DNA of 64,000 bases from Macrostomum lignano (Eukaryota). Position 1 is the first letter of the stretch; every line of letters begins with the position of its first letter. The notes under the pieces were generated by a model. The model had not been told where the DNA came from, made no database searches, and worked only from the letters and a program-made list of their open reading frames with translations. The stretch lies in assembly GCA_002269645.1 (NCBI GenBank), contig NIVC01000048.1, positions 138,566-202,565 of the forward strand. Reading direction: 5' to 3'. The position numbers and the translations under genes were made by a program. Shown piece after piece: positions 1 through 47,822 of this stretch.

Positions 1-480
1 AACACAAAAATTTCCATTTACTAACCGATAATATTTGCTTTTTCCTGACCAATCGTGGGCTAGCTTTTGCGAAAATTTTTCATTGGTTTAAAAATTTTAA
101 TCCCCAGAGGTGAATGTCAAACCATGTTGACTGTGTCTTGGCCCTGGCAACCACGTGCAGCTAGTGCTGCGCAGGGATGTCCGTTGGTGCCGGTGTCCAG
201 GAGGTGAATGGCTGCGCGCCCGGTAGCACTAAGGTATCGCAGACGAGCTGGCACAACTTCTCGGGCCTGAAAACGTCAAAAAAGGTCTGGGTTCGGGCCA
301 GAGGCAGGTGAGCTTGTCCTGAGTAAAGGCGGAACATTCAGAGATGAAGTCAACACCGGAAAAATGCAGAATGGGCATCCTTCACTGCAGATTTTCCCAT
401 GGAGGCGTGACCTGAGACCTGAGAGGACCATTGCTACAGGGCCTTGATGTCCCTGCTGTTGAGTCCAAGCAGGGCCCTGT
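1..480. repeat. Paralog of the lectin-gene upstream region (copy of ~9310-9830); implies another lectin copy just left of the window
   Basis: Colinear matches such as accatgttgactgtg.cttggccctggcaaccacgtgca, gaaaacgtcaaa and gcagaatgggcatcc..cactgcagattttcccatggagg occur at both 120-410 and 9428-9725; also partly matches 24920-25020. Confidence 0.85.
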
Positions 481-529
481 GAAAAACGAGAGATCGAGGG
501 TCAGGGACGACCCAAAGAGGCACTGCTGT

Positions 530-3029: not shown

Positions 3030-3362
3030 AGCAAGCAAGCATTGATAGCAAGCATTCCCCAGATAGCAAGTATCTCCCCGATAGCAAGCATCCCTAGATA
3101 GCAAGAACCGATCCCCCTCCCAGATAGCAAGCATTCCCCAGATAGCAAGCATCCCTAGATAGCAAGAACCGACCCCCAAAAAAAGCAAGCATCCCCAGAT
3201 AGCAAGCACCCCATAGATAGCAAGCACCCCTCCACAAAAAAGCAAACATTCCCCATATAGCAAGCATTCCCCATATAGCAAGCATTCCCCAGATAGCAAG
3301 TATCTCCCCAGATAGCAAGCATCCCTGGATAGCAAGAACCGACCCCCCTCCCAGATAGCAAT
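3030..3362. repeat. Degenerate continuation of the gatagcaagc minisatellite
   Basis: 18-23 bp units built on gatagcaagcat(t)cccc. Confidence 0.9.
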
Positions 3363-4329: not shown

Positions 4330-5050
4330 CATAGCGTTGATCCACTTGCCCTTCACAGAAGCAGTATTCAACGAGGCATTGCTGCGCATTGAGGACAAAT
4401 TTTAGAACTGACAGATCGTCCCTTAAACGTTTTTGGACTTCCAGCACCTGGAAAAACATCAACAAGAGAATTTGAGTAGGAAGATGCTGCGAGAAACTAG
4501 CTTTGACCGCGAGCAGCTTCGTCAGTTCATTGAGGAAAATGAGCCCCGTCTACTACCTGAGCAGGCAGAGGCGTACCAAGAAGTACTGCAAAAAGTGAAT
4601 AACAATGTAGAAGGAATACTTTTCCTGGATGCTCCAGGGGCGACAGAAGAAACTCTTCTGATTAACCTCCTTCTGTCAAAGGTTAGACACGGAGGCGATA
4701 TTGCAGTTGCTGTCGCTTCCTCTGGAATCGCAGCCATGCTACTTCAAGGTGGTTGCACTGCTCACTCAGAACTAAAATTGCCACTTGATCTGTCAAGACC
4801 TGACGCTAAAGGAACTGCGCAGCAACAACCAGCTCATGGATGGTGTCACCCTGCTGCTCTATGGAGACTTTAGACAGACGTTGCTTGTAATTCCGCGCGG
4901 CACCCCAGCCCAAGATGAGATCAATGATTGCCTCAAATCTTCTCATCTGTGGCCATCAGTTGAAAAGCTGCACTTGCGAACCAACGTCAAGGCTGCAGTT
5001 TATGGCGATGAAACGGCTCATCAATTTTCTATTAATCTCTTGGAGGTCTG
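4330..5050 (+). mobile_element. Helitron PIF1-family helicase relic (N-terminal/middle part, frameshifted)
   Basis: ORFs 4433-4873 and 4785-5069 give FLDAPG(A)T, VAVASSGIAA.LL.GG.TAHS.LKLPL, LYGDFRQTL.VIPRGT and CLKSSHLW, typical Helitron helicase motifs with a degenerate Walker A. Confidence 0.9.
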
Positions 5051-8483: not shown

Positions 8484-9227
8484 TCAGTTAAAAGGCGACA
8501 GGCACTCGCACAGAACATTCGGAACAGCACCGTATGTGTCGCTACTATCCGTGAGACCCATTTTATTGACTTGTCTCGCGATTACATTTTCTCCGCCACC
8601 GTTGTTATTCGGCTGGTCAGTGGCCCAAAAAGCGGGATCAACGTTGATGTTGCAGCCGACCCAGTACCAGCCGCCCAGAGGCTCCGCACTACCTTCTGGC
8701 TGAAGTCCTCCGAGCCAGAAGTTCGAATTACTACCATTGGTGAAGATCCAGTCCACGTGGCTCATCTCTTGCTCGCTGGTCACGTCGGCCATGATGACCA
8801 GACCGCTCTCTGACTCGCACTTCTGCCTGCTCGGCAACCACGTCCCGATGCCAGAGTACAGCCTGTACTTCACTCCGCACAGGTCCATGCCGTAGCCAGA
8901 CGGACACAGCGCGCCCGCCTCGAGTCCCGGCCGCTGCTTGACGAACACCCGGCCTCTCCTGGAGCAGCCGCAGCTCCTCACCGACTTGCTGCACTTGTCG
9001 AACACGAACAGCTGGCACGGATCCTTGGGCAGGGTAAACGCCTGACAGCGCTGGTTTTGGGCGCACAGAGCGGCGCACCCGACTTTGTTGAGTGCGCTTG
9101 AGTAGGTCTCAACAAACTCATCGTTGATGCAGAGGCTGCCGTCAATGAGGCTGTACACCTGTTCGCTGGCTGTGGCGAGGCCGAGTACAAGACTCATCCA
9201 GGCCACAATATTCGATACGCTGGTCAT
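8484..9227 (-). CDS. Secreted PAN/Apple-domain + C-type lectin-domain protein, copy 1 (247 aa, coding region intronless)
   Basis: Likely start MTSVSNIVAWMSLVLGLATA (signal peptide); C..LC.....C.AF PAN-type cysteine pattern; CTLD motifs FWLGG, WYW, FWATDQPNN; GC3-rich codons; same length as the paralog at 23902-24645. Confidence 0.85.
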   Translation of the reverse strand: MTSVSNIVAWMSLVLGLATASEQVYSLIDGSLCINDEFVETYSSALNKVGCAALCAQNQRCQAFTLPKDPCQLFVFDKCSKSVRSCGCSRRGRVFVKQRPGLEAGALCPSGYGMDLCGVKYRLYSGIGTWLPSRQKCESESGLVIMADVTSEQEMSHVDWIFTNGSNSNFWLGGLQPEGSAEPLGGWYWVGCNINVDPAFWATDQPNNNGGGENVIARQVNKMGLTDSSDTYGAVPNVLCECLSPFN

Positions 9228-10339
9228 TTTTGCTCGTAGCGTCGGTAAGGCTGCTGGGTTTTTTAATTTGTCAGAGTAATACAAATAAACCATGTAAATT
9301 GCTTTTAGCAGTAAAATTTCCAACAACTAGCCGATTATATTTGCTTTTTTCTGACCAATCATGTGCTAGCTTTCTTGGGAAATTTTTCATTGGTGGAAGT
9401 GAAAAAGAAAATGAGGTGAGTGTCACACCATGTTGACTGTGCCTTGGCCCTGGCAACCACGTGCACCGATGCCGCGCAGGGGGATCCGGTGGTGCCGGTG
9501 TCCGCAGCGGTGTGCCTCTCTGGAGAGTCCTGCAGGTGAATGGTCGCTCGCCCGGTAGCCCTAAGGTATCGAGGCCGAGCTGGCAGATATTTTCGGGTCT
9601 GAAAACGTCAAAGAACGTCCGGGTTTGTGCCCGAGGTAGGCGGGGCATTCACAGATGAAGTGCTGCACATTCTTGACACCGGAGATGCAGAATGGGCATC
9701 CTCACTGCAGATTTTCCCATGGAGGTAGCGTTTTTTAGCAAAGCACCCATGACCTGATAGGGCCATTGCTACCGGGCCTTGGTGTCCCTGCCGTTGAGTC
9801 CTAGCAGGGTCCTACGGAACGGGAGAGGGACAGGGGATTGCAACAAAGACTCCCCCAGTGGGAGCCAGAGAAAGAAATATTTTAGCTCCAGAGTGCCCCA
9901 GACGAGACCTTACCAAACGAAAATTAAATTCTTTTCTGGGTTCTTTTGACCACTTTGACCTCCCCGATATGGGTCCCCCATTTCAGTTGAGCCTTGACAT
10001 CTTAGCAATTCCCCCAGCCTTAACATCTCATGTTATATGTGCGCTATATGAACTATTGCGTATAAGACGCACGTTAAATTTCATCAATTCATTATGTGCT
10101 AGAATTGAGAGCTCTTAATGAGCCGCCACTAAAAGAAAGAGAAAGAACAAGCCACTGCTGCAGGATAAAAAAGAAAGTACGTTGGTAACTCGCTACAATT
10201 AAACAATCACATACTTCGACTTTAATGTCGTTAATCTAGAAGAGTCCATCGAAACGGAAATAATAGTCATAGAAGATGCAGAAGACATAACATCTCAAGA
10301 ATTCCCTCAGAGATATTTGAAATCTCAGCAATTCGATCC

Positions 10340-10992
10340 CCCAATAGCAAGCATCCCCCAGATAGCAAGCATCCCCAGATAGCAAGCACCCCCAGATAGC
10401 AAGCATACACCAGATAGCAAGTACCCACCAGACAGCAAGCACCCCACCCCAGATAGCAAGCACCCCACCCCAGATAGCAAGCACCCCACCCCAGATAGCA
10501 AGCACCCCTAGATAGTAAACACCCTCCAGATAGCAAGCACCCCACCCCAGATAGCAAGCACCCCACCCCAGATAGCAAGCACCCCACCCCAGATAGCAAG
10601 CACCCCCTAGATAGTAAACACCCTCCAGATAGCAAGCACCCCACCCCAGATAGCAAGCACCCCACCCCAGATAGCAAGCACCCCACCCCAGATAGCAAGC
10701 ACCCCACCCCAGATAGCAAGCACCCCACCCCAGATAGCAAGCACCCCACCCCAGATAGCAAGCACCCCACCCCAGATAGCAAGCACCCCACCCCAGATAG
10801 CAAGCACCCCACCCCAGATAGCAAGCACCCCACCCCAGATAGCAAGCACCCCACCCCAGATAGCAAGCACCCCACCCCAGATAGCAAGCACCCCACCCCA
10901 GATAGCAAGCACCCCACCCCAGATAGCAAGCACCCCACCCCAGATAGCAAGCACCCCCTAGATAGTAAACACCCTCCAGATAGCAAGCACCC
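10340..10992. repeat. 21-bp minisatellite (gatagcaagcaccccacccca)n, paralog of the 18-bp array
   Basis: Tandem units; same left anchor tctcagcaattcgatccccc as at ~1735. Confidence 0.95.
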
Positions 10993-17240: not shown

Positions 17241-18008
17241 AATTTTAGTATATTTTTACAAGTTTTGTAGAGGACATTCAATCGTATGCAGTAAAGTGTT
17301 GTGCGAATTCTTTTTAACAAATTTATCTAGGAAAATTAGATGCACTCATACATTGATTTGAGCAATCTTTGACCCGCGAAGCCACTTGGCGGTGATGCGA
17401 ACCGGCCTTAGCACGGATCGCTTCTCAGAAATGATCCATTGAGTAAATTATGTTGCTTTGCGTTGTAGAAAAACTCCAAACTACGAAAGAATGATGACAA
17501 GTAACTTTCGATGAAAACTGTTTATGCTTCAGAGTATAACTGATGCCAACTATATTTAAGTAGCTCAAACAGATTTTAAATAAAAAACAAACTGCAGTTT
17601 CGTTTATTGCAGAGAAGGTTTGCTTAAAAATCGAAGTAAAAGCTTGGCTAATGAACAAGCTGCAAATTCCAAAAAACTTGATTTGATAAAACCAACAGAC
17701 AGAGATCGACAGGACACACTACAATAGAGCTCTTTTAAACATCTCTCTTCCAGCATTTATTGATTATTATTCGGCCCTTCTATTGGAATTTTTCTGAATA
17801 CATTGCGTCAGTTTTTATTGAGAAATTTATAAAAAATCTGTGTACTGTAAGCTGGGATGTTTGAATTATTACATGTAGTTATATAATAAATTTTGGACAC
17901 TTACACACGGTTATTGACGGTCACTTTGATAGCCTCAGTAAAATATTTTTGTGATTAAATCTGTCCATCCGGTTCCTCTTGTCTGGCGGTGCCTGCAGTT
18001 TCCCATAA

Positions 18009-18302
18009 TCAGTTAAAAGGCGACAGGCACTCGCACAGAACATTGGAAACAGCACCGTTCGTGTCGCTGATTTCATTAATACCCAATAGACCCTCGAATC
18101 TTCCAATTAAATTATCTTTGTCATCGTACGCTCGTAATTATTCGGCTGGCCAGTGGCCCAAAAAGCGGCATCAACGCTGATGTTGCAGCCGACCCAGTAC
18201 CAGCCGCCCAGAGGCTCCGCACTGCCTGTTGGCTGGCGGCCTCCGAGCCAGATCGATTGTCCAGAGCTGTAGTTTGAGTAGATGGAGTCCACGTGGCTCA
18301 TC
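18009..18302 (-). pseudogene. 5'-deleted, frameshifted PAN-CTLD lectin copy 2
   Basis: MSHVDSIYSNYSSGQSIWLGG...WYWVGCN...FWATGQPNNY, then a frameshift, then GINEISDTNGAVSNVLCECLSPFN*; the sequence jumps from mid-CDS directly to upstream-region homology (gtccgggtttgggcacgag at ~18350). Confidence 0.9.
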
Positions 18303-19094
18303 TAAGAATTTCTTAGGCCTCAATAATGTCAAAAATGTCAAACCTCGTGTCCGGGTTTGGGCACGAGACGTGACTACTTAGAGGCAGAATGGGGTTGTTT
18401 TTAGGCAGATTTAACGCAAAAACCAAAATTATACTACTATTGTAAAAAGAAGTACATGTAAGTAGTATATGGAAACGATATCCTAAGCGTACTGAATTTC
18501 AGTATCTTCTTCACATGACCACCCAAATTGCGCGGAAATTTCGGTTCGTGCAATTTTCTTGCGTAAATTTCATGTAATTGCAATTATCTTGAGGCAAAGC
18601 GTAAGAATTGCAATTTTCTTGCAAGGAAAATTGCAATTCTCGCAATAGCTAATGTTCTTCTTACACTACTTATTTAGTAGAAATAACAGCATTTCAGCTA
18701 GCAGCTATTCCTACTCAGTAGAAATTGCTATTATTCCAGAGAAAAAAGGTTTTTGGAATACTTTTTGTCCGCAGGCACGTTCAGGTGATATGAGTTTCAA
18801 TTTTCAGGTAATTTAAGGTACAAACATCTAAATCATATACCATGAATTGCTGGAAGAACATATAATAAAAGCGAAATCTGATAAGTTTTTCTAAAAGTTT
18901 TTTTTGTAAAACCAAAATTTGTAAAAGCTACAATATAGTTTATACGTTTTGAAATGCGCTTAAAATTATGACATGTATCTTTTGTTTTATGGTTTAAGCG
19001 AGTGAATTATTTTTTTAAAAAATTGCTTTTTTTCGTTTTCGATTTATGAAAAGTTCCGCTCATGTCAGCAGGTCATGAGCGGAACGATCCTGAA

Positions 19095-19450
19095 ATCCTC
19101 TATGAAAAGCAACAGATTGAAGAAGTCAATGAATTCAAATACCTGGGTATCATCTTTGAACCCAATAACAAATTTAAAAGATGCATTGCCTATGAGATCA
19201 AACAAAGTAATTCTGCAATGTTTTCACTGCTGCACAAAGTCAAAGACACCACGCTGGACATCATGCTCATCGGTAGACTATTCAACTCTCTGGTCCACCA
19301 GTTAATAACGTACGGTTGTGAAATCTGGGGACCTCTAGCAATTAACCTGTACTGATCTCAAGAGTCAAGACCATCGACAAAATCAAACAAATTTCTACAA
19401 ATACCTTCCTAACCTACCTCAAACCACTTGCAACTCTGTTATAGCTACCT
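19095..19450 (+). mobile_element. Non-LTR retrotransposon (LINE) RT C-terminal fragment
   Basis: EEVNEFKYLGIIF...LITYGCEIWG followed by QTNFYKYL.NLPQTTCNSVI, typical of the RT thumb region of CR1/L2/RTE-type LINEs. Confidence 0.75.
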
Positions 19451-22994: not shown

Positions 22995-23585
<591 letters not shown>

Positions 23586-23901
23586 TAGAGATCAGATCCA
23601 CAGACAACATTATAATGGAGCCCTTTTAAACATATCTGTATTCGAGCAGTTATTAATTATTATTCGGCATTTCTATCAGGATGATCTTAAAGTCGAGCTG
23701 ATTTGCCTACCGTTTCAGATAGTTGCATTGAGAAATTTAACAGACTACTTTATACAGGAGATTTTTTCATGAATAGTTATTCACTTTTGGAAACTATTCA
23801 AAGTTATTGATAGTCACTTTCATAACGTTAGCAATGTAGTTTTAAGAATAAATTTCTTCATTCGACTCCTCTTGTCGGCTGGTATCTGCAGTTTCTCAGA
23901 A

Positions 23902-24645
23902 TTAAGCAAATGGCGACAGGCACTCGCACAGGACATTGGAAATAGCATCGTACTTGCCGCCGATATCCGTAAGACCCATAAAATCCAGATACTTTGAAAT
24001 TACATTTTCTCCTCCGAGGAAATTGTCGGGCTGATCCTTAGCCCAGAAGCTGCCAACGCTGGTGTTGCAGCCGACCCAGTACCAGCCGCCCAGAGGCTCC
24101 GCACTGCCTGCTGGCTGGAGGCCTCCGAGCCAGATCGATTGTCCAGAGCTGTAGGTTGAGTAGATGGAGTTCACGTGGCTCATCTCCTGCTCGCTGGTCA
24201 CGTCGGCCATGATGACCAGACCGCTCTCTGACTCGCACTTCTGCCTGCTCAGCCACCACGTCCCGATGCCAGAGTACAGCTTGTACTTCACTCCGCACAG
24301 GTCCATGCCGTAGCCAGACGGACACAGCGCGCCCGCCTCGAGTCCCGGCCGCTGCTTGACGAACACCCGGCCTCTCCTGGAGCAGCCGCAGCTCCTCACC
24401 GACTTGCTGCACTTGTCGAACACAAACAGCTGGCACGGACCGTCAGCCAGGCTGAACGCCTGACAGCGCAGCTTCCGGGAGCACAGAGAGGCGCAGGCCA
24501 GCTTTCTGACCACGGCTGGGTGGAACTCGACGAATTCGGTATTGATGCAGAGACTGCCGTCAATGAGGCTGTACTGCTGCTCGTTGGCATTGGTGAGGCC
24601 AAGGACAAGAGTCATCCAGGCCACAATGTTCGATACGCTGAGCAT
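23902..24645 (-). CDS. Secreted PAN/Apple-domain + C-type lectin-domain protein, copy 3 (247 aa)
   Basis: MLSVSNIVAWMTLVLGLTNA signal peptide; PAN cysteines; IWLGG, WYW, WAKDQPDN; acceptor ttttaccgacAG 12 nt upstream of the ATG. Confidence 0.87.
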   Translation of the reverse strand: MLSVSNIVAWMTLVLGLTNANEQQYSLIDGSLCINTEFVEFHPAVVRKLACASLCSRKLRCQAFSLADGPCQLFVFDKCSKSVRSCGCSRRGRVFVKQRPGLEAGALCPSGYGMDLCGVKYKLYSGIGTWWLSRQKCESESGLVIMADVTSEQEMSHVNSIYSTYSSGQSIWLGGLQPAGSAEPLGGWYWVGCNTSVGSFWAKDQPDNFLGGENVISKYLDFMGLTDIGGKYDAISNVLCECLSPFA

Positions 24646-25769
24646 TTTTGCTCGTAGCTGTCGGTAAAATGTTTTGTTTAAGAAATTGGTCAAAGTAATA
24701 ACGAGAGACGATGCGAATCGCTTTTATAAAAACATTTTTAGCAAGCGGATTCTATTTGATTTTTTTGCCCACTCGTGTCTCGTTTCCGAGAATTTTTTTA
24801 TTTGTTGAAAAAATTGAATTTCCTGCGGTGAATGCCAAACTACAGTGACTTTGTCCTGACTCAGCTAGAGGGGGCCCCGCGGGGCACCGGATGCAGCTTT
24901 GAGTCTTCGCCGCCAATTTCGCTAACCCCTGGCAACCACGGGAAGCAATGCTGCGCAGGGAGATCCGGTAGTGCCGGCGTCCTCAGCGCGGTCCTCCTCC
25001 GGAGTCCAGGAGGTGGGTGGTTAGAGAACGAGTAGAGAACGAGGTTCACGGCTGAGCTGGCTGAGCCTGCAGCTGGACTGCTTATTCCCCTATCAGGGAC
25101 AAATTTAGAAAAGAAAATTCAGGAAGTTTCCTGCACCGCGTCCGAAACTTTGAGAACCTCTGAAGAGTTGATTCGGGAGGTGATCAGTCCCCCGAAAACT
25201 CCCACTTCCAGACACTTAAGCCTGGGAACAAAATCAGTGATCACTTACTGTTGCGGGCTCCTCTTCTTTGTCGCGCGCGTCTGTAGAGCTCGTCTCCTTA
25301 GAGCTGTTGCTCCCGGGGTAGTCTTCTTGAAGTCTAGAATCGGCCGAAAGTGAGAGCGTAGCAATTAAATCGACGTCGCAGTATTCCTTCGAGTGCAGAA
25401 TTCAATGTATTCTCGAGTGCCGAAATCAATGTCAACGATGCGCCCTAGTAACAAAATCAACTTCAATACGAGGTCCTCCAGAAAGGGCGTCTTCTTCTAG
25501 AACTAACGGAATCGGAGTCGTGTTCTCCTATCGGTTAATCTAGGATAACCAAAATCAATCAAATCAATAATCCTCTAAGGGTATCGCAATCGGTCCGCAG
25601 ATCCTATCCAATCCCTTAGGAAAAGGGAGGCCTCAAACTCAATGGAGCCCAACAAATGGAGCCCAACTCAATGGAGCCCAACAAGACTCAATAAAATCAA
25701 CTGAACAGTAACGGCCGGCAATAACAATCGCTCTCAATAATCAAAATAACGAAGACTTGAACAAAGCTT

Positions 25770-29136: not shown

Positions 29137-29834
29137 ATGACCAGCGCACTGATGGAGCACAGCGGCAATGTTGGCAGCCTCCTGGCCGCAAGACGGCAGG
29201 CCAGGGAGGAGCGTCGCCGACAAAAGCGGATAGTGATTTTCTGCAACGGCGACATCTTCTTCAAGGGCAAGAAGGTGAGCATCACGCCGAACAGGTACGT
29301 GTCCTACAACGACCTGCTGCAGGACCTGACGTACCGGATGCCGCAGAATCTGTACCTGCCCAATGGCGTCAGGCAGCTGTTCTCGCCCAGCAGCGGCCGA
29401 CGCCTTGGAAGCATCTCCGACCTGCGGGACGGCGGCGCGTACGTGTGCGCTGGCAATGAGACTTTCAAGCCTGTGAAGTATGGAGCCGCCGAGCTGCTGC
29501 CCTGGGGCAAAGGTGAGCTGATTGAGACTACTGGCAACTCACCGCATTGAGTTCGCATGTTCACACATTCACGCAGCTTTCTAACTGTCAATATTCAATT
29601 CTTCTGTTCCCTGTTTTAGAGGGTAAGAGATTTTTAAAAAATCCTTTTGCCTGCCCCTGATGCTAGGGGTTGAATCAATTTATTAGAATTCTTGCACTCA
29701 CCTTGTTTAGTGCACCTTTATCATTTTAACATAGGCTGTGTTTTTTAGAAATTATCGATTTTCCTTTCGGTTTTTCATTTTCTAGTTTCAAAAGAACCTG
29801 ATAGGTAGATGAGTAGACAGACAGACAGACAGAC

Positions 29835-29930
<96 letters not shown>

Positions 29931-32900
29931 CGATCCCTAACTACAGTGCCGTCTATCAAACCCTCTCAGGCGCGCAGTCCAGCGGCAACTTCGACTCCGC
30001 CATCTACACAGGCAGCAGCTCCCAATTCGCCGGCTACAACGCGTTCCCGCCATCAAGGTTCCTGAAGCGGCAGCACCACGGCCAGCAGCAGCCGCAGGCT
30101 CTGCAGCTCAAGCACCCGCCCGAGTCCAGCCGCTTCGCCGCTCTCCGAGGATCCCGCGGACACGAGGCTGGCAGCGGAGCCGGCGCCGATGCTTCCGCTG
30201 GCATCGGTGGTGCCCCCGCCAGCCCAAGGTGATCACCGTCATCAAGGACGGTCAGCGGCCGCGCCAGGTGGTGAAGATCCTGCTGAACAGGCGCGGGGTG
30301 CAAAGCTTCCAGCAGCTGCTGGCCGACATCTCCGACTCGTTCGGCGGCGGACGGCGCGGCGGGCGACTTCGCCGACTGTGGAGCATCGCCGGCAGGGACG
30401 TTCGGGACGTCGGCGACCTGTTCCGCGACGAGGAGATCTTCGTGGGCAGCTCCGGCGAGGAGGCGATGACGCTGGATCGGGTGTCCGACCTGCTGGACGA
30501 GTTGTACCCCGGGAACGCCGAAGTCAAGTCGTTGCTCCGACACTGGGAGCGCCGGCTCCGACGCCAGCAGAAGCGACGCGGCAGCAAGGGTCACGTGACC
30601 GCTCAGCAGCAGCAGCAGCAGAAGCAGTCTCGGCAGCCGCAGCAGCTGCCGCCTCCGCGCGTTGAAGAGCGAGACAGCGGCTACGAGGAGGCTGAGGGCT
30701 CGGCGTCCACCCCGACCTCCGGCGCCGCTCCGCTCCGAGGCGAGCCGCTGCGCCAGGCTCTGGCAGCCCGGCGGCATTCGAAGCCGCTGCCGCTGATCCA
30801 CGAGCCGCCATCGCAGCAGCAGCAGCAGCCGCAGGAGCCGGAGGAGATCAGCCGGCAGCAGAGGCTGGCGGAGGAGCAGCGACTGGCTGATGAGGCAGCG
30901 ACAGCGAAGAAGGACAAGCAGCGCCGGTTGGGTAAACAGCGCGAGACTCCGGCAGGGAAACAACAGCAGCAACAGCAGCAGCAGCAGCAAGCCAAGGGTC
31001 GAGTTGTGTTGCCACCGATCCAAGCCTCTTCCAAGGAGCCGCAGACTGCTGAGAAATCTCGAAAAGCAGACGAGAAGCAGGCGCGCAAGGAGAAGAAGCA
31101 GCAGGAGGAGCAGCAAGAGGAGCAGCAGCAGCAGGAAGCTGATCAGGCACTGCCGTCGCTTCCGCAGCTTCCACCGGAACCTGCCGCCGTGGCAGCCGCC
31201 GACACAAAATCTCCCAAGCACCCATCGCCAAGGCAGCTTCAGCAGCAGCAGCAGCAGCAACATCAACAGTCAAGACGGTCATCCACACCGAAACCGGAAA
31301 CTCCGGTGGCTCGGGTCCTGTCCCCGGTGCGCGAGGAAGAGAAGGAGGCCACGGCGGCCACAACGGCCACCACTGCCGCAGCCACTGTCACCGCCACCGC
31401 TACCGCAGCAGCCGCCACGCCATCTGATGAAGCTTCCAGCGTCCAGGAGACGCCTAGGAAGCCTGATGAAAAGAAGGACCAGCAACAGCGGGCGTCGGCC
31501 AAGGAGAAGGTCAAGAAGGAATCACCTCAACGACAAACTCTCAAGACTCCCAAGAAGAGCGCATCGAAGAAGCGTCAGTCGGAGAGTGAGAAGCCGGAAG
31601 AGCCTCAGCAGCAGCCGCCGGCCCCGCCCGACTCCCAGCGGCCGCTGATTCGCCCCATCTCATCCAGCCGGTTCATCAACGAACGCTTCGAACTGGGCAA
31701 AACCATGGGCGACGGCAACTTCGCCATCGTCCGGGCCTGCGTCAAGAAGGAGAGCCGAAACGAATACGCCATGAAGGTGATTGACAAGTCCAAGCTGCGC
31801 GGCAAGGAGCACATGGTGATCAATGAGGTTCGCATCATGAAGATGTGCCAGCATCATAACATTGTCCGCCTGGTAGAGGAGTACGAGACTCGCACGGAGA
31901 TCTACCTGGTGATGGAGCTGGTCAAAGGTGGCGACCTGTTTGACGCCATCAGTCAGGTTGTGAAGTTCAACGAGACCCAGGCGGCTCACATGGTGGCTGA
32001 CATGGCCAATGCGCTGTTCTACCTGCACAGCAGGAATATTGTGCACCGGGACCTCAAGCCTGAGAACTTGCTGGTAAGGGACAAGTTGATACCTTGTAGG
32101 GATTACAGTAATTACTCTTTGTTGGGAGTTCAGAGTGTAGGAGCCTAATTTCTAATTTGGGGACATATTAGGGATTATGGATTTGGGATCTGGGATTTGA
32201 GAGCATTCGGGATCTGGGATTCTGGGATCTGGGACGTGGGATTTGGGATCTGAGATCTGAGATTAGGGATCTAGGATCTTGGATCTGGGATTTGGGATCT
32301 GGTAGTGTTATGGGAATATGACGCCATTTTATCTTCCATCCGCAGGTTTACCGCACCAAAGACAATCGGATCAGCTTGAAACTGGGCGACTTCGGTCTAG
32401 CGATGGAGGTTGAGAAGCCGATTTACACAGTCTGCGGAACCCCTACCTATGTTGCTCCGGAGATTCTGGAGGAGAGAGGCGAGTATTGCTATTGCTTCAC
32501 TTCTAGACGTAACCTTGATTCTCTTATGGCTAACTGGATCGGTGTTTGGAAAGAAATTAGACGGATGAAATACCGGTTTTAACTAGTGAAACATCCAATT
32601 AGACAGGTGAAACATCCAATTAGACAGGTGAAACATCCAATTAGACAGGTGAAACATCCAATTAGACAGGTGAAACATCCAATAAGACAGGTGAAACATC
32701 CAATTAGAGTGGTGAAACATCCAATTAGACAGGTGAAACATCCAATTAGACAGGTGAAACATCCAATTAGACAGGTGAAACATCCAAGTAGAGTGGTGAA
32801 ACATCCAATTAGACAGGTGAAACATCCAATTAGACAGGTGAAACATCAAATTAGACAGGTGAAACATCCAATTAGACAGGTGAAACATCCAATTAGACAG

Positions 32901-41166: not shown

Positions 41167-41631
41167 TCAAGCGTCTTGCATGAGCCAGCTCTCCTCAACA
41201 ATAGCGCGGACTTTCTTCTCATATTCCCGCTTATTCTCCTGGTAGAGAGTGGCGGCAACGTTATTGGCAGGCGAGTTGGGGTTCGGCTCGTCCAGCAGAG
41301 ACTGAATGGAAGTGAGGATTGCTGACACATCGTAGGTGGGGCTCCATTTGTTCTGCAGAATGTCCAAACAGATGCTGCCATCAGCGTACACATTGGGGTG
41401 GAACATTTTCGATACGAATCTAACCGTAGGCGGCTTATTGGGGTATTCCTCAGTGAACTCCATGGTCAGCTGGAAGGTGCCGTCCTCGAACGGGGTGTCC
41501 TGAGGACCGAATATGACGCAATTCCACTGCATAATATTGTCCTCCTTGGGTGCGCCGGACACCCCGGCTGGAGGGTCCTCTTGGAGGCGCTTGAAATCTC
41601 GGATTAAACGACGACGCGACGGGGTTGCCAT
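41167..41631 (-). CDS. UBE2A: Ubiquitin-conjugating enzyme E2 A/B (Rad6), intronless, 154 aa
   Basis: [26 protein letters not shown]; HPN motif; catalytic ICLDILQ; [13 protein letters not shown]. Confidence 0.97.
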
Positions 41632-44587: not shown

Positions 44588-47421
44588 TGAGGGGCACTAA
44601 AAAGTTCTAAGCCTGACCAAGATCCCATGGTCACAAAGCACTGAAAATTGATCCTTTAACACAATATGTTAATGTTTTGACAAAAATTTCAGCTCTCTAG
44701 GCATTACTAAAGTTCCATAGGACCTTAATATTTTCAGCTACCTATGGCAAATTCTCAAGAACTAAAAATGAAGTACAGGATAGTGATCAAATTTCTGACC
44801 TTAAAGGGCTCAAAAGCTGCTGAAATCCAAAGTTGCTTGGCTGCCATATATCCTAGGGCTGCCCCCTCATATGCCACTGTCAAGCATTGGGCAGCCAAGT
44901 TCAAGCGTGGCCCCGACTCTCTCAACAGGGTGACCGCGCTCCAGTAACTTTTTTCTTCCCTGACTAAACTAAATTTTCCCTGACACACTAAAAGTAATAG
45001 AAGAAGCTCAGTGATAGTTGTGCACAATAATTTTATTGCAACAAACTGTTGCGCATTAAAAAGTCAGCAATGTTGAGATTAATTTAATTTGAATTGAAGT
45101 TGAAACAGCGCATGTATTGGCAATAATTTGTTTGAATTAATAATGAAAAATTAATGCACCGGAAACTGACCACAAAAAACGTAGTGTTTGATAAAAAATT
45201 GCATGAAAAATATCAAGTACTAACTTTTATTGTATGTGGCGCACAGTAAAACAAAGTTAAGAGATGTAGCACTGTAGTTAAAATTGAGTTCAATGAGGAA
45301 TCGTACCTTCAAGTGCTACAATCTCTTTCTCTACCTTCTCCACTTCTTCCTTTTTCTGTTGTGCAGCACGACGCAGTGCATTTGACTTCACGAGTAGGCT
45401 CATGTTTGAATCCGTCTCACGTTGGTACACGAGGCTATCCGCATCTTTGGTGAGAACTGCAACATCAAGCAGGAGCTTCTTTTGCTTCGACTGGAGCTCC
45501 AGCACCGTTGCATCCTTCCTTTTCCTTGATTCCTCGTATTTCCGATGAGATGCTTCTGCTCGCTGCTGCTCCAACATGGCCCTGTACCTACTCCTGGCAC
45601 TTCTCACACTCTTCAACATCTCCTCGGTAACTTTCGCGATGATTTCAGCGGCAGTCTTTCCCTTTTGCCACTCGTACACAAGTCGGAGAGAACGAATGCT
45701 CAATCCCTGAAGATTTGGTTCTAGGCACTCTTTGTTGACACTGAAGCCGCGCTCAACAGCAGCATTCCCATGGAAGGTTGTCAGAACCATCTTCACAATG
45801 ATCTGCAAATTATTGGTACTCGTTGAATCAGTGAAGAGGGAAGCAAAGAGGACATCAAGTCGGTCTGACTTATAGTCGAATTGAGACAGCTGAAATCGAT
45901 GCTCACGAACTGTAACAGTTCGAAACTGGGTGAACTCGGACTTTGCAGCGTCAGCTTCCTGTGCAGTGATGCGTCCCTTAGTGTAGGCTTCCAGGACAAG
46001 CGCATCAAAATCCGCTTGAGCCGGTGATGAGGATGGTGGGTCACTATCCAATTCTGCCACCAGCACAGAAAAACAAAATATACACCTTTCTATTAATGGC
46101 CTGGTTAATATATTATCATAGTATGGACTATATATTTTACTGTCAGTGTGATTAGCACAGCAATTATAGATTAGCAATATGTAGGCCTACAAGCCCATAA
46201 ATTATTCATTTAAGAACAAGTATCTGCCAATTTCAAATAAATACCAGCTTTTAAAAACAAAAATACATGGAACAAACAAAACAGATTTACTATTTGAGCT
46301 ACTTAGTGCTATCGATTAGCCGCTTTCTTGTCTCACAATTTTTTTCTTCAATTTTCTAATTTACTTTCAAATTTTCCCTGACTTCCTAAGAATTTCCCTG
46401 ACTTTCCCTGACTTTCCAGACCACATTTTTTTCCCTGACTTTCCCTGACTTTCCCTGACCGCGGTCACCCTGCTCAAAGATGACCCTCGATGTGGACGCC
46501 CTAGACTGCTGTCACTGCTGATAACATCCAGCACATCCAGGCCCTGGTTGATGGCGACTGGCGGATAAAGGTCAGGGAACTTGCAGTAGACACTGGGCTT
46601 TTTGACCTACAGGTCATTAAGATCCTGCACTAGCATCTTCATCTGTCGAAGGTCTCAGCCTGATAGATCCCACAAATCTTGACAAGCAACCAGAAGTCCG
46701 CGTGGTTGCAGTATGTGAAGCTTGTCCTGCAAACTTACAATCTAGATCCTGCCAGCTTTTTGTCTTGCTATGTGACCAGTGATGAGACATGGATCCACCA
46801 TCATGATCCTAAGTTAAAGAAAGAGTTGAAGCAATGGCTGCCAGTTGGTGCACCTGCACCACTGAAGGCACAGTCTGGATGCAATGCAGGCAAGATAATG
46901 CTCACTATCTTTTGGGATGCCAAAGGCCCACTGCTACTAGACTTTTTGCCACACAAGCAGACAATCACAGGTGCCTACTATGCCAATCTAATTGCCCATA
47001 TGCGCGAGGCAATCAAGGAGAATTGGCGGGGAATGCTGAGCCGTGGTGGTGCTGCTGCACGACAATGCACCTGCTCACACCAATGGGCTGGCAAAGGCAG
47101 CTGTCAATATTGCAGGGTTCCAAGAGCTGCTACACCCTGCCTATTCACCAGACCTTGCCCCAAGTGACTTTTACCTATTTCCGCATCTTAAGCCAGCACT
47201 CTGTGGGCAGCAATTTGACACCAATGAGGCACTGAAGGATACTTCAACCTTCTGGTTCAAGGGGTGCTCAAAGCAGTTCTTTCAGAGTAGCATCAAAGCA
47301 CTGCGATCAAGATGTCACAAGTGCATCTTGGTCAAGGAAGACTATGTAGAAAAAACTGATTGCATTTGCCCCAATTCTCTTTTTTTCATACTGAGGCTCA
47401 GAACTTTTTTAGTGCCACTCA
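44588..47421 (+). mobile_element. Mariner (DD34D) element, pseudogenised and interrupted by a nested element
   Basis: TA TSDs (44586-87, 47422-23); TIRs tgaggggcactaaaaagttct / agaactttttttagtgccactca; N-terminal MANSQ...WAAKFKRG at 44744, resuming KDDPRCGRP at 46473; TSDETW, HDNAPAH, YSPDLAPSDF, KCILVKEDYVEK. Confidence 0.95.
44926..46472 (-). mobile_element. Internally deleted hAT-like element with 5-bp TSD (hAT5-like), retaining the last transposase exon
   Basis: 13-bp perfect TIR CAGGGTGACCGCG; TSD ctcaa at 44921-25 and 46473-77; subterminal ttccctgac repeats; ORF 45290-46177 contains FHGNAAVERGFSVNK (hAT-type S/ERxFS dimerisation motif), with an acceptor near 46053. Confidence 0.85.
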
Positions 47422-47426
47422 TACAT

Positions 47427-47822
47427 GCGCAACTTTGGGAATCACCCGGCCGTTTCTATTGGCAACACACACATGTAAGTCGCTATTGGCTGAGAGCAGT
47501 CACGTGACTACTACTCCGTCCAATAGCGACTTACATGTGTGTGTTGCCAATAGAAACGGCCGAGTGAATCCCAAGGTTGCGCCCAAGCATGGTGCCACTT
47601 GTATCTTTTGTTCTGGTGATCCATTCCAAATAATTTCATTTTACATAGTTTTATAGTAGCAACTAGAGATAGAACAAATATTTCGTTCCATTCCTTTGCA
47701 ACATGCACATGTAAGTTGCTATTGGACAGAATATTAGTCACATGACTGCTTTCAGCCAATAGTGACTTACATATATATGTTGTCAATAGAAACAGCTGGG
47801 TGATTCCCAAGGTTACGCATAT
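47427..47822. mobile_element. MITE-like element whose inverted arms are themselves hairpins
   Basis: 63-bp stem 47427-47489 / 47520-47582 (3 mismatches); degenerate inverted copy of the hairpin at ~47695-47820. Confidence 0.65.

Follow-up and report, generated by a model that had tools for sequence, protein, structure and literature searches.

The question raised by this locus is how two neighbouring genes can be almost identical in their middle and widely diverged on either side of it. The DNA concerned is a 64,000-nucleotide stretch of the genome of the flatworm Macrostomum lignano (contig NIVC01000048.1 of assembly GCA_002269645.1, positions 138,566 to 202,565; hereafter the window), in which two intact, intronless paralogs are encoded on the minus strand: copy 1 at 8484..9227, recognised from its open reading frame (ORF) and translation, and copy 3 at 23902..24645, ~15 kb away in the same orientation and 75% identical to copy 1 in amino acid sequence. 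A first-pass annotation, made from the letters alone, had assigned 247 aa to each product, as the complete 247-codon ORFs on the minus strand bear out, and had seen in the pair, together with a third copy, a mosaic of constant and hypervariable blocks that it attributed to segmental gene conversion or to a shuffling of loops. The present analysis argues that the mosaic is probably the work of interlocus gene conversion, which acted on old tandem paralogs and only over the stretch in which they match best. Both proteins are predicted to consist of a signal peptide, a PAN/Apple-like domain (residues ~24-100), and a C-type lectin-like domain (CTLD, residues ~108-245), and the segments discussed below are named after this layout.

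The near-identical core of copies 1 and 3

On the minus strand, copy 1 8754..9021 (codons ~70-158) and its counterpart in copy 3, 24172..24439, are 98.1% identical, with 5 mismatches in 268 nt at copy 1 positions 8769, 8833, 8836, 8863, and 9006, a recount that agrees with the first-pass figure and with its remark that silent sites are included. The bases immediately outside (8753 and 9022) are mismatched, and divergence jumps on both sides. An unsupervised change-point search, performed by penalised-likelihood segmentation of 1348 aligned nucleotides (gene and flanks), returned exactly 9021 and 8754 as limits and divided the alignment into three segments of 70.8%, 98.1% (9021..8754), and 65.1% identity. 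By Nei-Gojobori counting, the core shows 2.0 differences in 59.7 synonymous sites and the sequence outside it 46.8 in 104.8 (Fisher p = 1.5e-9). The same contrast is found by a conservative test limited to codons that specify the same amino acid in both copies, where differences occur in 2 of the 82 codons of the core and in 25 of the 92 beyond it (p = 3.6e-6), and a scan-statistic permutation on these codons gave 0/2000. Synonymous divergence (dS) of 0.034 in the core, against 0.66, 1.5, and 2.0 in the diverged segments, corresponds to a ~20-60-fold depletion.

When copies 1 and 3 are compared segment by segment with the Nei-Gojobori method, dS and the ratio of nonsynonymous to synonymous divergence (dN/dS) are, respectively, 0.28 and 0.53 for the signal peptide (codons 1-21), 0.66 and 0.42 for the N-terminal PAN part (codons 22-69), 0.034 and 0.43 for the core (codons 70-158), 1.5 and 0.6 for the alpha2-beta2 loop (codons 159-171), 0.22 and 0.09 for the WLGG...GCN block (codons 172-194), 2.0 and 0.16 for the C-terminal loops (codons 195-239), and 0.38 and 0.28 for the tail (codons 240-248). 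Alignment and segment dS support the first-pass description of the intervening and flanking segments as heavily substituted. In copy 1, the old diverged segment at 8691..8753 (minus strand; ~70% identical to copy 3, dS ~1.5, dN/dS 0.6) encodes the second half of helix alpha2 and the alpha2-beta2 loop ahead of WLGG, and that at 8487..8647 (minus strand; 68% identical, dS ~2, dN/dS 0.16) encodes the long-loop region with the triad QPN, followed by beta3, beta4 (with LTD for WND), and beta5. The non-coding 5' and 3' flanks of the two genes are 65-71% identical and have therefore diverged like the variable coding parts.

Two consequences follow from these flanks. First, the duplication must be old and the core the young part of the gene, because the flanks have diverged to the same extent as the variable coding segments; a recent duplication whose loops were later replaced was considered and rejected on the same grounds. 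Second, a recent duplication or a single crossover can be distinguished from conversion, because divergent sequence, including non-coding DNA, lies on both sides of the core. The word "hypervariable" does not fit the segments around it. With dN/dS of 0.16-0.6, saturated dS, and a divergence like that of the neighbouring non-coding DNA, they are simply the product of old divergence under purifying to relaxed selection and not of fast evolution. No positive selection was seen in them by pairwise dN/dS, a test that is weak at saturated dS. The substitutions between copies 1 and 3 comprise 67 transitions and 58 transversions without base-specific bias; this ordinary spectrum led to the rejection of a signature of hypermutation, or of one like that of diversity-generating retroelements (DGRs).

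It might be supposed that the core is alike merely because it is constrained. However, its synonymous sites differ freely in other members of the family: core dS of copy 1 is 0.54 against an M. lignano paralog on contig L001 and 1.24 against the gene for paralog P0005, and three further family contigs, from Logan assemblies of public sequencing runs, have 68-70% nucleotide identity. The core of copies 1 and 3 is thus young rather than constrained. In the predicted structure, it extends from the middle of the PAN-like domain, across the linker, to the middle of CTLD helix alpha2, and since these limits cut through both the domain and the helix, the tract is not a structural or functional cassette. 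At the protein level, it coincides with the most conserved part in every paralog pair examined.

Copy 2 and the 43-nt block

The first-pass annotation had also reported a second constant block, and alignment confirms that 43 nt are identical in all three copies (8648..8690 in copy 1, 18181..18223 in copy 2, and 24063..24105 in copy 3, all on the minus strand). The block encodes (S)AEPLGGWYWVGCN / SAEPLGGWYWVGCN and follows strand beta2, where the long-loop region begins. Its 11 degenerate codons show no difference, where ~27-31% of such codons differ elsewhere; in copies 1 and 3, this alone is marginally unusual (p ~0.02-0.03). The block is significant because it coincides with a breakpoint in copy 2.

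Copy 2, located by tblastn in two frames and by three-way alignment, retains only the last ~95 codons of the gene (~18009..18303, minus strand). Homology is lost abruptly at 18303/18304, nothing being present 5' of the position equivalent to copy 1 8767, and an 8-bp insertion at ~18129-18136 shifts the frame. Because of this 5' truncation and the frameshifting insertion, copy 2 is a pseudogene fragment and not a gene. Its two sides have different nearest relatives. On the 5' side of the block, 18224..18303 (minus strand) matches copy 3 24106-24185 at 76 of 80 positions (95%) and copy 1 at 70%. On the 3' side, 17332..18180 (minus strand), which comprises the C-terminal coding part and ~0.7 kb of 3' flank, is nearest to copy 1 (78-88% through the flank, against 67-68% to copy 3). 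Informative sites favour copy 3 by 21:2 on the 5' side and copy 1 by 100:41 on the 3' side, and the switch has a max-chi2 of 32.6 that was not reached by permutation (0/20000). Copy 2 is therefore a chimera whose junction falls within the 43-nt block. The alignment suggests that 18224..18303 is a second conversion tract, the 5' end of which would have been lost with the truncation. Because the core tract and the chimera are both present, at least two separate exchanges have taken place in the array.

The fragment shows that one loop segment has been exchanged at least once in evolutionary time, in a single event that involved a dead copy. The truncation point of copy 2 (copy 1 8767) lies just 13 nt from the 3' edge of the conversion tract (8754), a closeness that may be coincidence or may mark a locally break-prone site. 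A transposon was looked for in the DNA beyond the truncation junction, and no repeat of that DNA was found within the window. An ORF resembling the C-terminal part of a non-long-terminal-repeat reverse transcriptase, without a Pfam hit, lies at 19062-19355 (plus strand), ~0.8 kb beyond the truncation, and is counted as transposon debris.

Probable gene conversion and competing explanations

We infer that the mosaic was produced by repair, with tract limits set by the identity that constraint had preserved. In this model, copies 1 and 3 would be old duplicates (dS ~0.7-2, flanks 65-71% identical), in which a recent non-allelic conversion overwrote ~268 bp in mid-gene, presumably through double-strand break repair templated by the neighbouring paralog. 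Protein constraint acting across the family may have kept this stretch the most alike in DNA and hence the best substrate for homologous recombination, such that heteroduplex would be restricted to the best-matching stretch and would stop where identity falls; conversion would be expected to end at conserved blocks because homologous recombination requires identity. Through a separate, second exchange, the alpha2-beta2 loop segment of copy 2 would have come to resemble copy 3, the remainder and flank of copy 2 staying copy-1-like. The variable segments, among them the loops of the canonical sugar-binding site, which carry QPN in copy 1 and QPD in copy 3, would be the unconverted parts. The graded dS suggests that older, partly eroded events occurred at the 5' end, the block, and the tail. 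The tract length is unexceptional: paralog conversion tracts in Caenorhabditis have a mean of 117 bp and a range of 12-2958 bp (PMC3966223), and 268 bp lies within that range. It is in this form that the segmental gene conversion proposed in the first-pass annotation holds, the core being young at synonymous sites, old divergence lying on both sides of it, and copy 2 switching relative at the 43-nt block.

Several considerations weigh against this account or limit its detail. The two full copies and one fragment are compatible with more than one donor, direction, and number of events. The analysis of copy 2 rests on three sequences without an outgroup, so that a homogenised loop in copies 2 and 3 is not strictly separable from a copy 1 loop replaced from an unseen paralog, although both alternatives are recombination. 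At the DNA level, the comparison is one among paralogs. GC content at third codon positions (GC3) reaches 0.90 in the tract, whereas the other parts of copies 1 and 3 have 0.47-0.79. This would fit GC-biased conversion but is weak evidence, because one distant paralog is likewise GC3-rich (0.86) in its N-terminal and core parts. Finally, the sequence is that of an assembly, in which homogenisation by consensus polishing of a repeat-rich neopolyploid genome is conceivable, though very improbable.

Among the alternatives, the one that survives best, although it is unlikely, is that recurrent conversion of the whole gene is opposed by divergent selection that retains distinct binding loops, as in the "islands of divergence" proposed for the Tigriopus GOT1 paralogs (PMC3728101). 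The divergent segments do hold the canonical ligand site of the CTLD, whose triad is not the same in copy 1 (QPN), copy 3 (QPD), and paralog P0001 (EPN), the M. lignano pair P0004/P0005 varies at the same positions, and the gradation of dS (0.2-0.4 in signal peptide, block, and tail; 0.03 in the core; 0.7-2 elsewhere) hints at more than one event. However, divergence in the non-coding flanks and in the N-terminal PAN-like segment equals that of the loops, with no sign that conversion reaches them, dN/dS is below 1 in the divergent segments, and one or two chance events in the best-matching stretch suffice without selection. Selection may help to keep the binding loops distinct, but it is not required by the data.

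A second group of explanations assigns the blocks a role in diversification. Conserved blocks might be used regularly as junctions for swapping loop segments among tandem paralogs and pseudogene fragments, such that the array would act as a germline combinatorial generator of lectin specificities; this is improbable, but if it were true, the array would yield QPN, QPD, and EPN types with different loops, and copy 2 would survive as the trace of one such swap. Another version, in which shuffling is programmed or facilitated, with constant blocks as anchors for the swapping of loop cassettes in germline or soma, is very improbable. It draws on the loop segment that the pseudogene fragment shares with copy 3, with its junction exactly in the 43-nt block, and on the placement of the exchanged and variable segments in surface loops of the lectin fold. 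However, no array of cassettes accompanies the one fragment in the 64 kb, it is the constant scaffold and not the loops that the largest tract homogenises, the tract limits cut through domain and helix, and the variable segments are without rate acceleration, positive selection, or mutational bias. Nor is any associated machinery found in the window, where the ORFs resembling reverse transcriptase and helicase are transposon debris. The combinatorial diversification of a lectin repertoire envisaged in the first-pass annotation is accordingly not supported, there being no array of donor cassettes, an ordinary substitution spectrum, and a tract that is not a structural module.

It is also conceivable, but barely credible, that the core is an artefact of assembly or polishing in which the reads of one paralog corrected the other over their most similar stretch. 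M. lignano is a neopolyploid flatworm (PMC10733133, PMC5704211), repeat-rich and hard to assemble (PMC10733133), and the window itself is repeat-rich eukaryotic DNA with many satellite arrays. However, five differences persist in the tract, both copies keep open frames, and the edges are sharp to a single base beside strongly divergent sequence in which reads would be anchored. In addition, an independently derived protein model joins the flanking segments of copy 3 to the same core protein. This model, UniProt A0A1I8GTV8 (M. lignano, 811 aa; P0006), was matched by an exhaustive search of representative sequences, and 236 of its last 238 residues are identical to copy 3, the differences being T36A and L132P. 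An internal stretch of it matches, at 79/79 aa, the antisense translation of 30681-31088 on the minus strand, in the region of a DCLK gene, and A0A1I8GTV8 is a mis-fused, chimeric model of this very locus from an independent annotation. At one of the five core mismatches (24250 region), its P132 agrees with copy 1, and the differences inside the tract may therefore be polymorphic or differ between subgenomes.

Purifying selection on the nucleotides of the core, by an alternative-frame ORF, a structured RNA, or a regulatory site, has next to no probability. A frame of 115-132 codons is indeed open on the same strand in both copies and in the L001 paralog, but such a frame is expected by chance at GC3 ~0.9, and it is broken by stop codons in two related contigs, L003 and L004. 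Other paralogs vary at the synonymous sites of the core (dS 0.54-1.24), no Rfam family is found in the window, and the folding energy of the core RNA is ordinary relative to shuffles (z = -0.73). The Arg-rich alternative-frame ORFs themselves lie across the core at 8731-9078 and 24038-24436 (minus strand; 115 and 132 codons, respectively), and they were rejected as an overlapping gene.

The gene family, its surroundings, and known systems

The products of copies 1 and 3 were assigned to their fold by structure prediction. With an alignment of 7 sequences, the AlphaFold2 (AF2) model was unusable (predicted local distance difference test, pLDDT, 45.7); that built from 27 relatives, used here, reached a pLDDT of 90.6 and a predicted template modelling (TM) score of 0.85. 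In a Foldseek search, the C-terminal 140 residues of the model aligned with the carbohydrate-recognition domains (CRDs) of CD23, langerin, mannose receptor CRD4, and codakine at E ~1e-7 and target TM scores of 0.75-0.82, and a search of the PDB with a family profile recovered codakine (1.7e-5) and the apple domain of Eimeria MIC5 (9e-4). Pfam gave nothing at E <= 0.01 for copy 1 or copy 3. Below threshold, Lectin_C matched 1 of 7 family members (E = 0.012), and PAN_4 scored weakly (E = 0.012; 16 bits against a cutoff of 27); the modelled residues 24-100 form a strand-helix-strand core, and one relative is named "Apple domain-containing" in UniRef. At the sugar site, copies 1 and 2 carry the triad QPN and copy 3 carries QPD, other M. 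lignano paralogs having EPN (as in P0001) or QPD. The downstream Glu of Ca2+ site 2 is present, and WND is replaced by LTD, more distant members retaining ND. On these residues, sugar binding by copies 1 and 3 is plausible, and we infer a lectin function with that reserve.

Word-index protein searches returned only distant M. lignano paralogs (identity about 55-56% at most) and one protein from a Logan public sequencing run, the nearest M. lignano proteins being annotated as "C-type lectin domain-containing". Look-ups of contigs encoding the exact products of copy 1, copy 3, P0001, and P0006 returned none, and a search of the literature for C-type lectins of Macrostomum turned up only papers on adhesion proteins, none of them dealing with this PAN-CTLD family. 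The predicted domains and the search results are consistent with a Macrostomum-specific family of small, secreted proteins that combine a PAN-like domain with a C-type lectin fold. Gene structure varies within it: the P0005 paralog (L001 10001-11240) bears introns, occupying 1240 bp for 279 aa with one intron within the core-equivalent region, and the paralog at L001 6226-6962, intronless like copies 1 and 3, is frameshifted beyond WLGG.

A search of the 64 kb by tblastn and blastn yielded two genes, one fragment, and one homolog of the upstream region. The last of these, at 1..520 (minus strand), is 72.7% identical by blastn over ~500 nt to the DNA upstream of copies 1 and 3, a relationship to their ~500-bp upstream regions that three-way alignment also recovers, and it implies that a further family member may lie just past the left edge of the window. 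Since this left-edge copy and copies 1-3 share one orientation, the family probably forms a direct tandem array of at least three, and probably four, members. The three promoter-bearing copies have a conserved island in their otherwise diverged upstream regions (9450-9549, 24927-25021, and about 130-230). The island carries CACGTGGTTGCCAGG, with an E-box-like CACGTG, and nearer the gene stands GATTGGTCAG, an inverted CCAAT; both are candidate shared promoter elements. Related minisatellites of 18-21 bp (AGCAAGCATTCCCCAGAT / CCCCAGATAGCAAGCACCCCA) occur at 1756-2067, 3044-3347, and 10373-10992. The left-edge copy and copy 1 have them 1-3 kb upstream, and copy 3 has none there; its 3' flank is directly bordered by a 595-bp (AGAT)n array (22995-23589).

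Elsewhere in the window, a DCLK-like gene (doublecortin-doublecortin-protein kinase; 29137-32148, plus strand) has a long, Gln/Glu-rich linker of low complexity and a GC content of up to 64%, and an uninterrupted ORF of 154 aa encodes a ubiquitin-conjugating enzyme E2 (41167-41631, minus strand; UQ_con, 2.5e-55). Further transposon debris consists of a Helitron-type, PIF1-like helicase fragment (4433-4873, plus strand) and a frameshifted mariner-type transposase (46679-47507, plus strand).

The mosaic has practical consequences for work on this family. Trees and dS dating will mislead unless the 268-bp tract is masked, and the near-identical core renders paralog-specific probes, RNA interference, and read mapping ambiguous in a neopolyploid genome that is hard to resolve. 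Copies 1 and 3, with differing triads (QPN vs QPD) on a shared scaffold, form a natural pair for tests of ligand choice. More generally, it should be borne in mind that a pattern of constant and variable blocks in tandem families of immune-type or lectin genes can come from one or two ordinary conversions over old divergence.

How the predicted protein and the inheritance of its gene compare with better-known systems can be considered in turn. The fold resembles that of the Ca2+-dependent C-type lectin CRDs (CD23, langerin, mannose receptor CRD4, codakine, CEL-I; TM ~0.8), and there is a WIGL-like WLGG strand, with the QPD/QPN(EPN) triad and a conserved Glu at the positions of EPN...E in codakine. 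In contrast to those domains, the protein has LTD for WND and lacks the canonical inner disulfide (EDC...WND..C), in place of which the family has a Cys pair of its own (WVGC...CEC), the Pfam Lectin_C threshold is not reached, a PAN-like domain is fused at the N-terminus, and sugar binding is predicted only. Programmed diversification of recognition proteins is known from the gene conversion of chicken immunoglobulin pseudo-V genes, the assembly of lamprey variable lymphocyte receptors, the FREPs of Biomphalaria, and sea-urchin Sp185/333, and the DGRs of bacteria and phages target C-type-lectin folds. The present array shares with such systems the swapping of segments between related copies of a binding protein, a pseudogene fragment as one partner, and a lectin-fold scaffold with variable loops; unlike them, it has no cassettes, loop targeting, mutational signature, or associated enzymes within the window. 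The closer likeness is to interlocus gene conversion, of which the human RHD/RHCE genes and the red/green opsins are examples. Mosaic divergence of tandem paralogs by this process has been described in Caenorhabditis (PMC3966223), in Tigriopus GOT1p1/p2 (PMC3728101), and for HMA4 in Arabidopsis halleri (bioRxiv 10.1101/2025.10.29.685298). As in those systems, a near-identical tract of a few hundred base pairs, synonymous sites included, is set within old paralogs, with tandem copies in the same orientation, boundaries on both sides, a chimeric third copy, and a GC-rich tract. Nothing essential is different here, the gene family (flatworm PAN-like plus CTLD) and the species being new instances, and the locus is thus no new kind of system but a new instance of a well-known process in an uncharacterised flatworm gene family.

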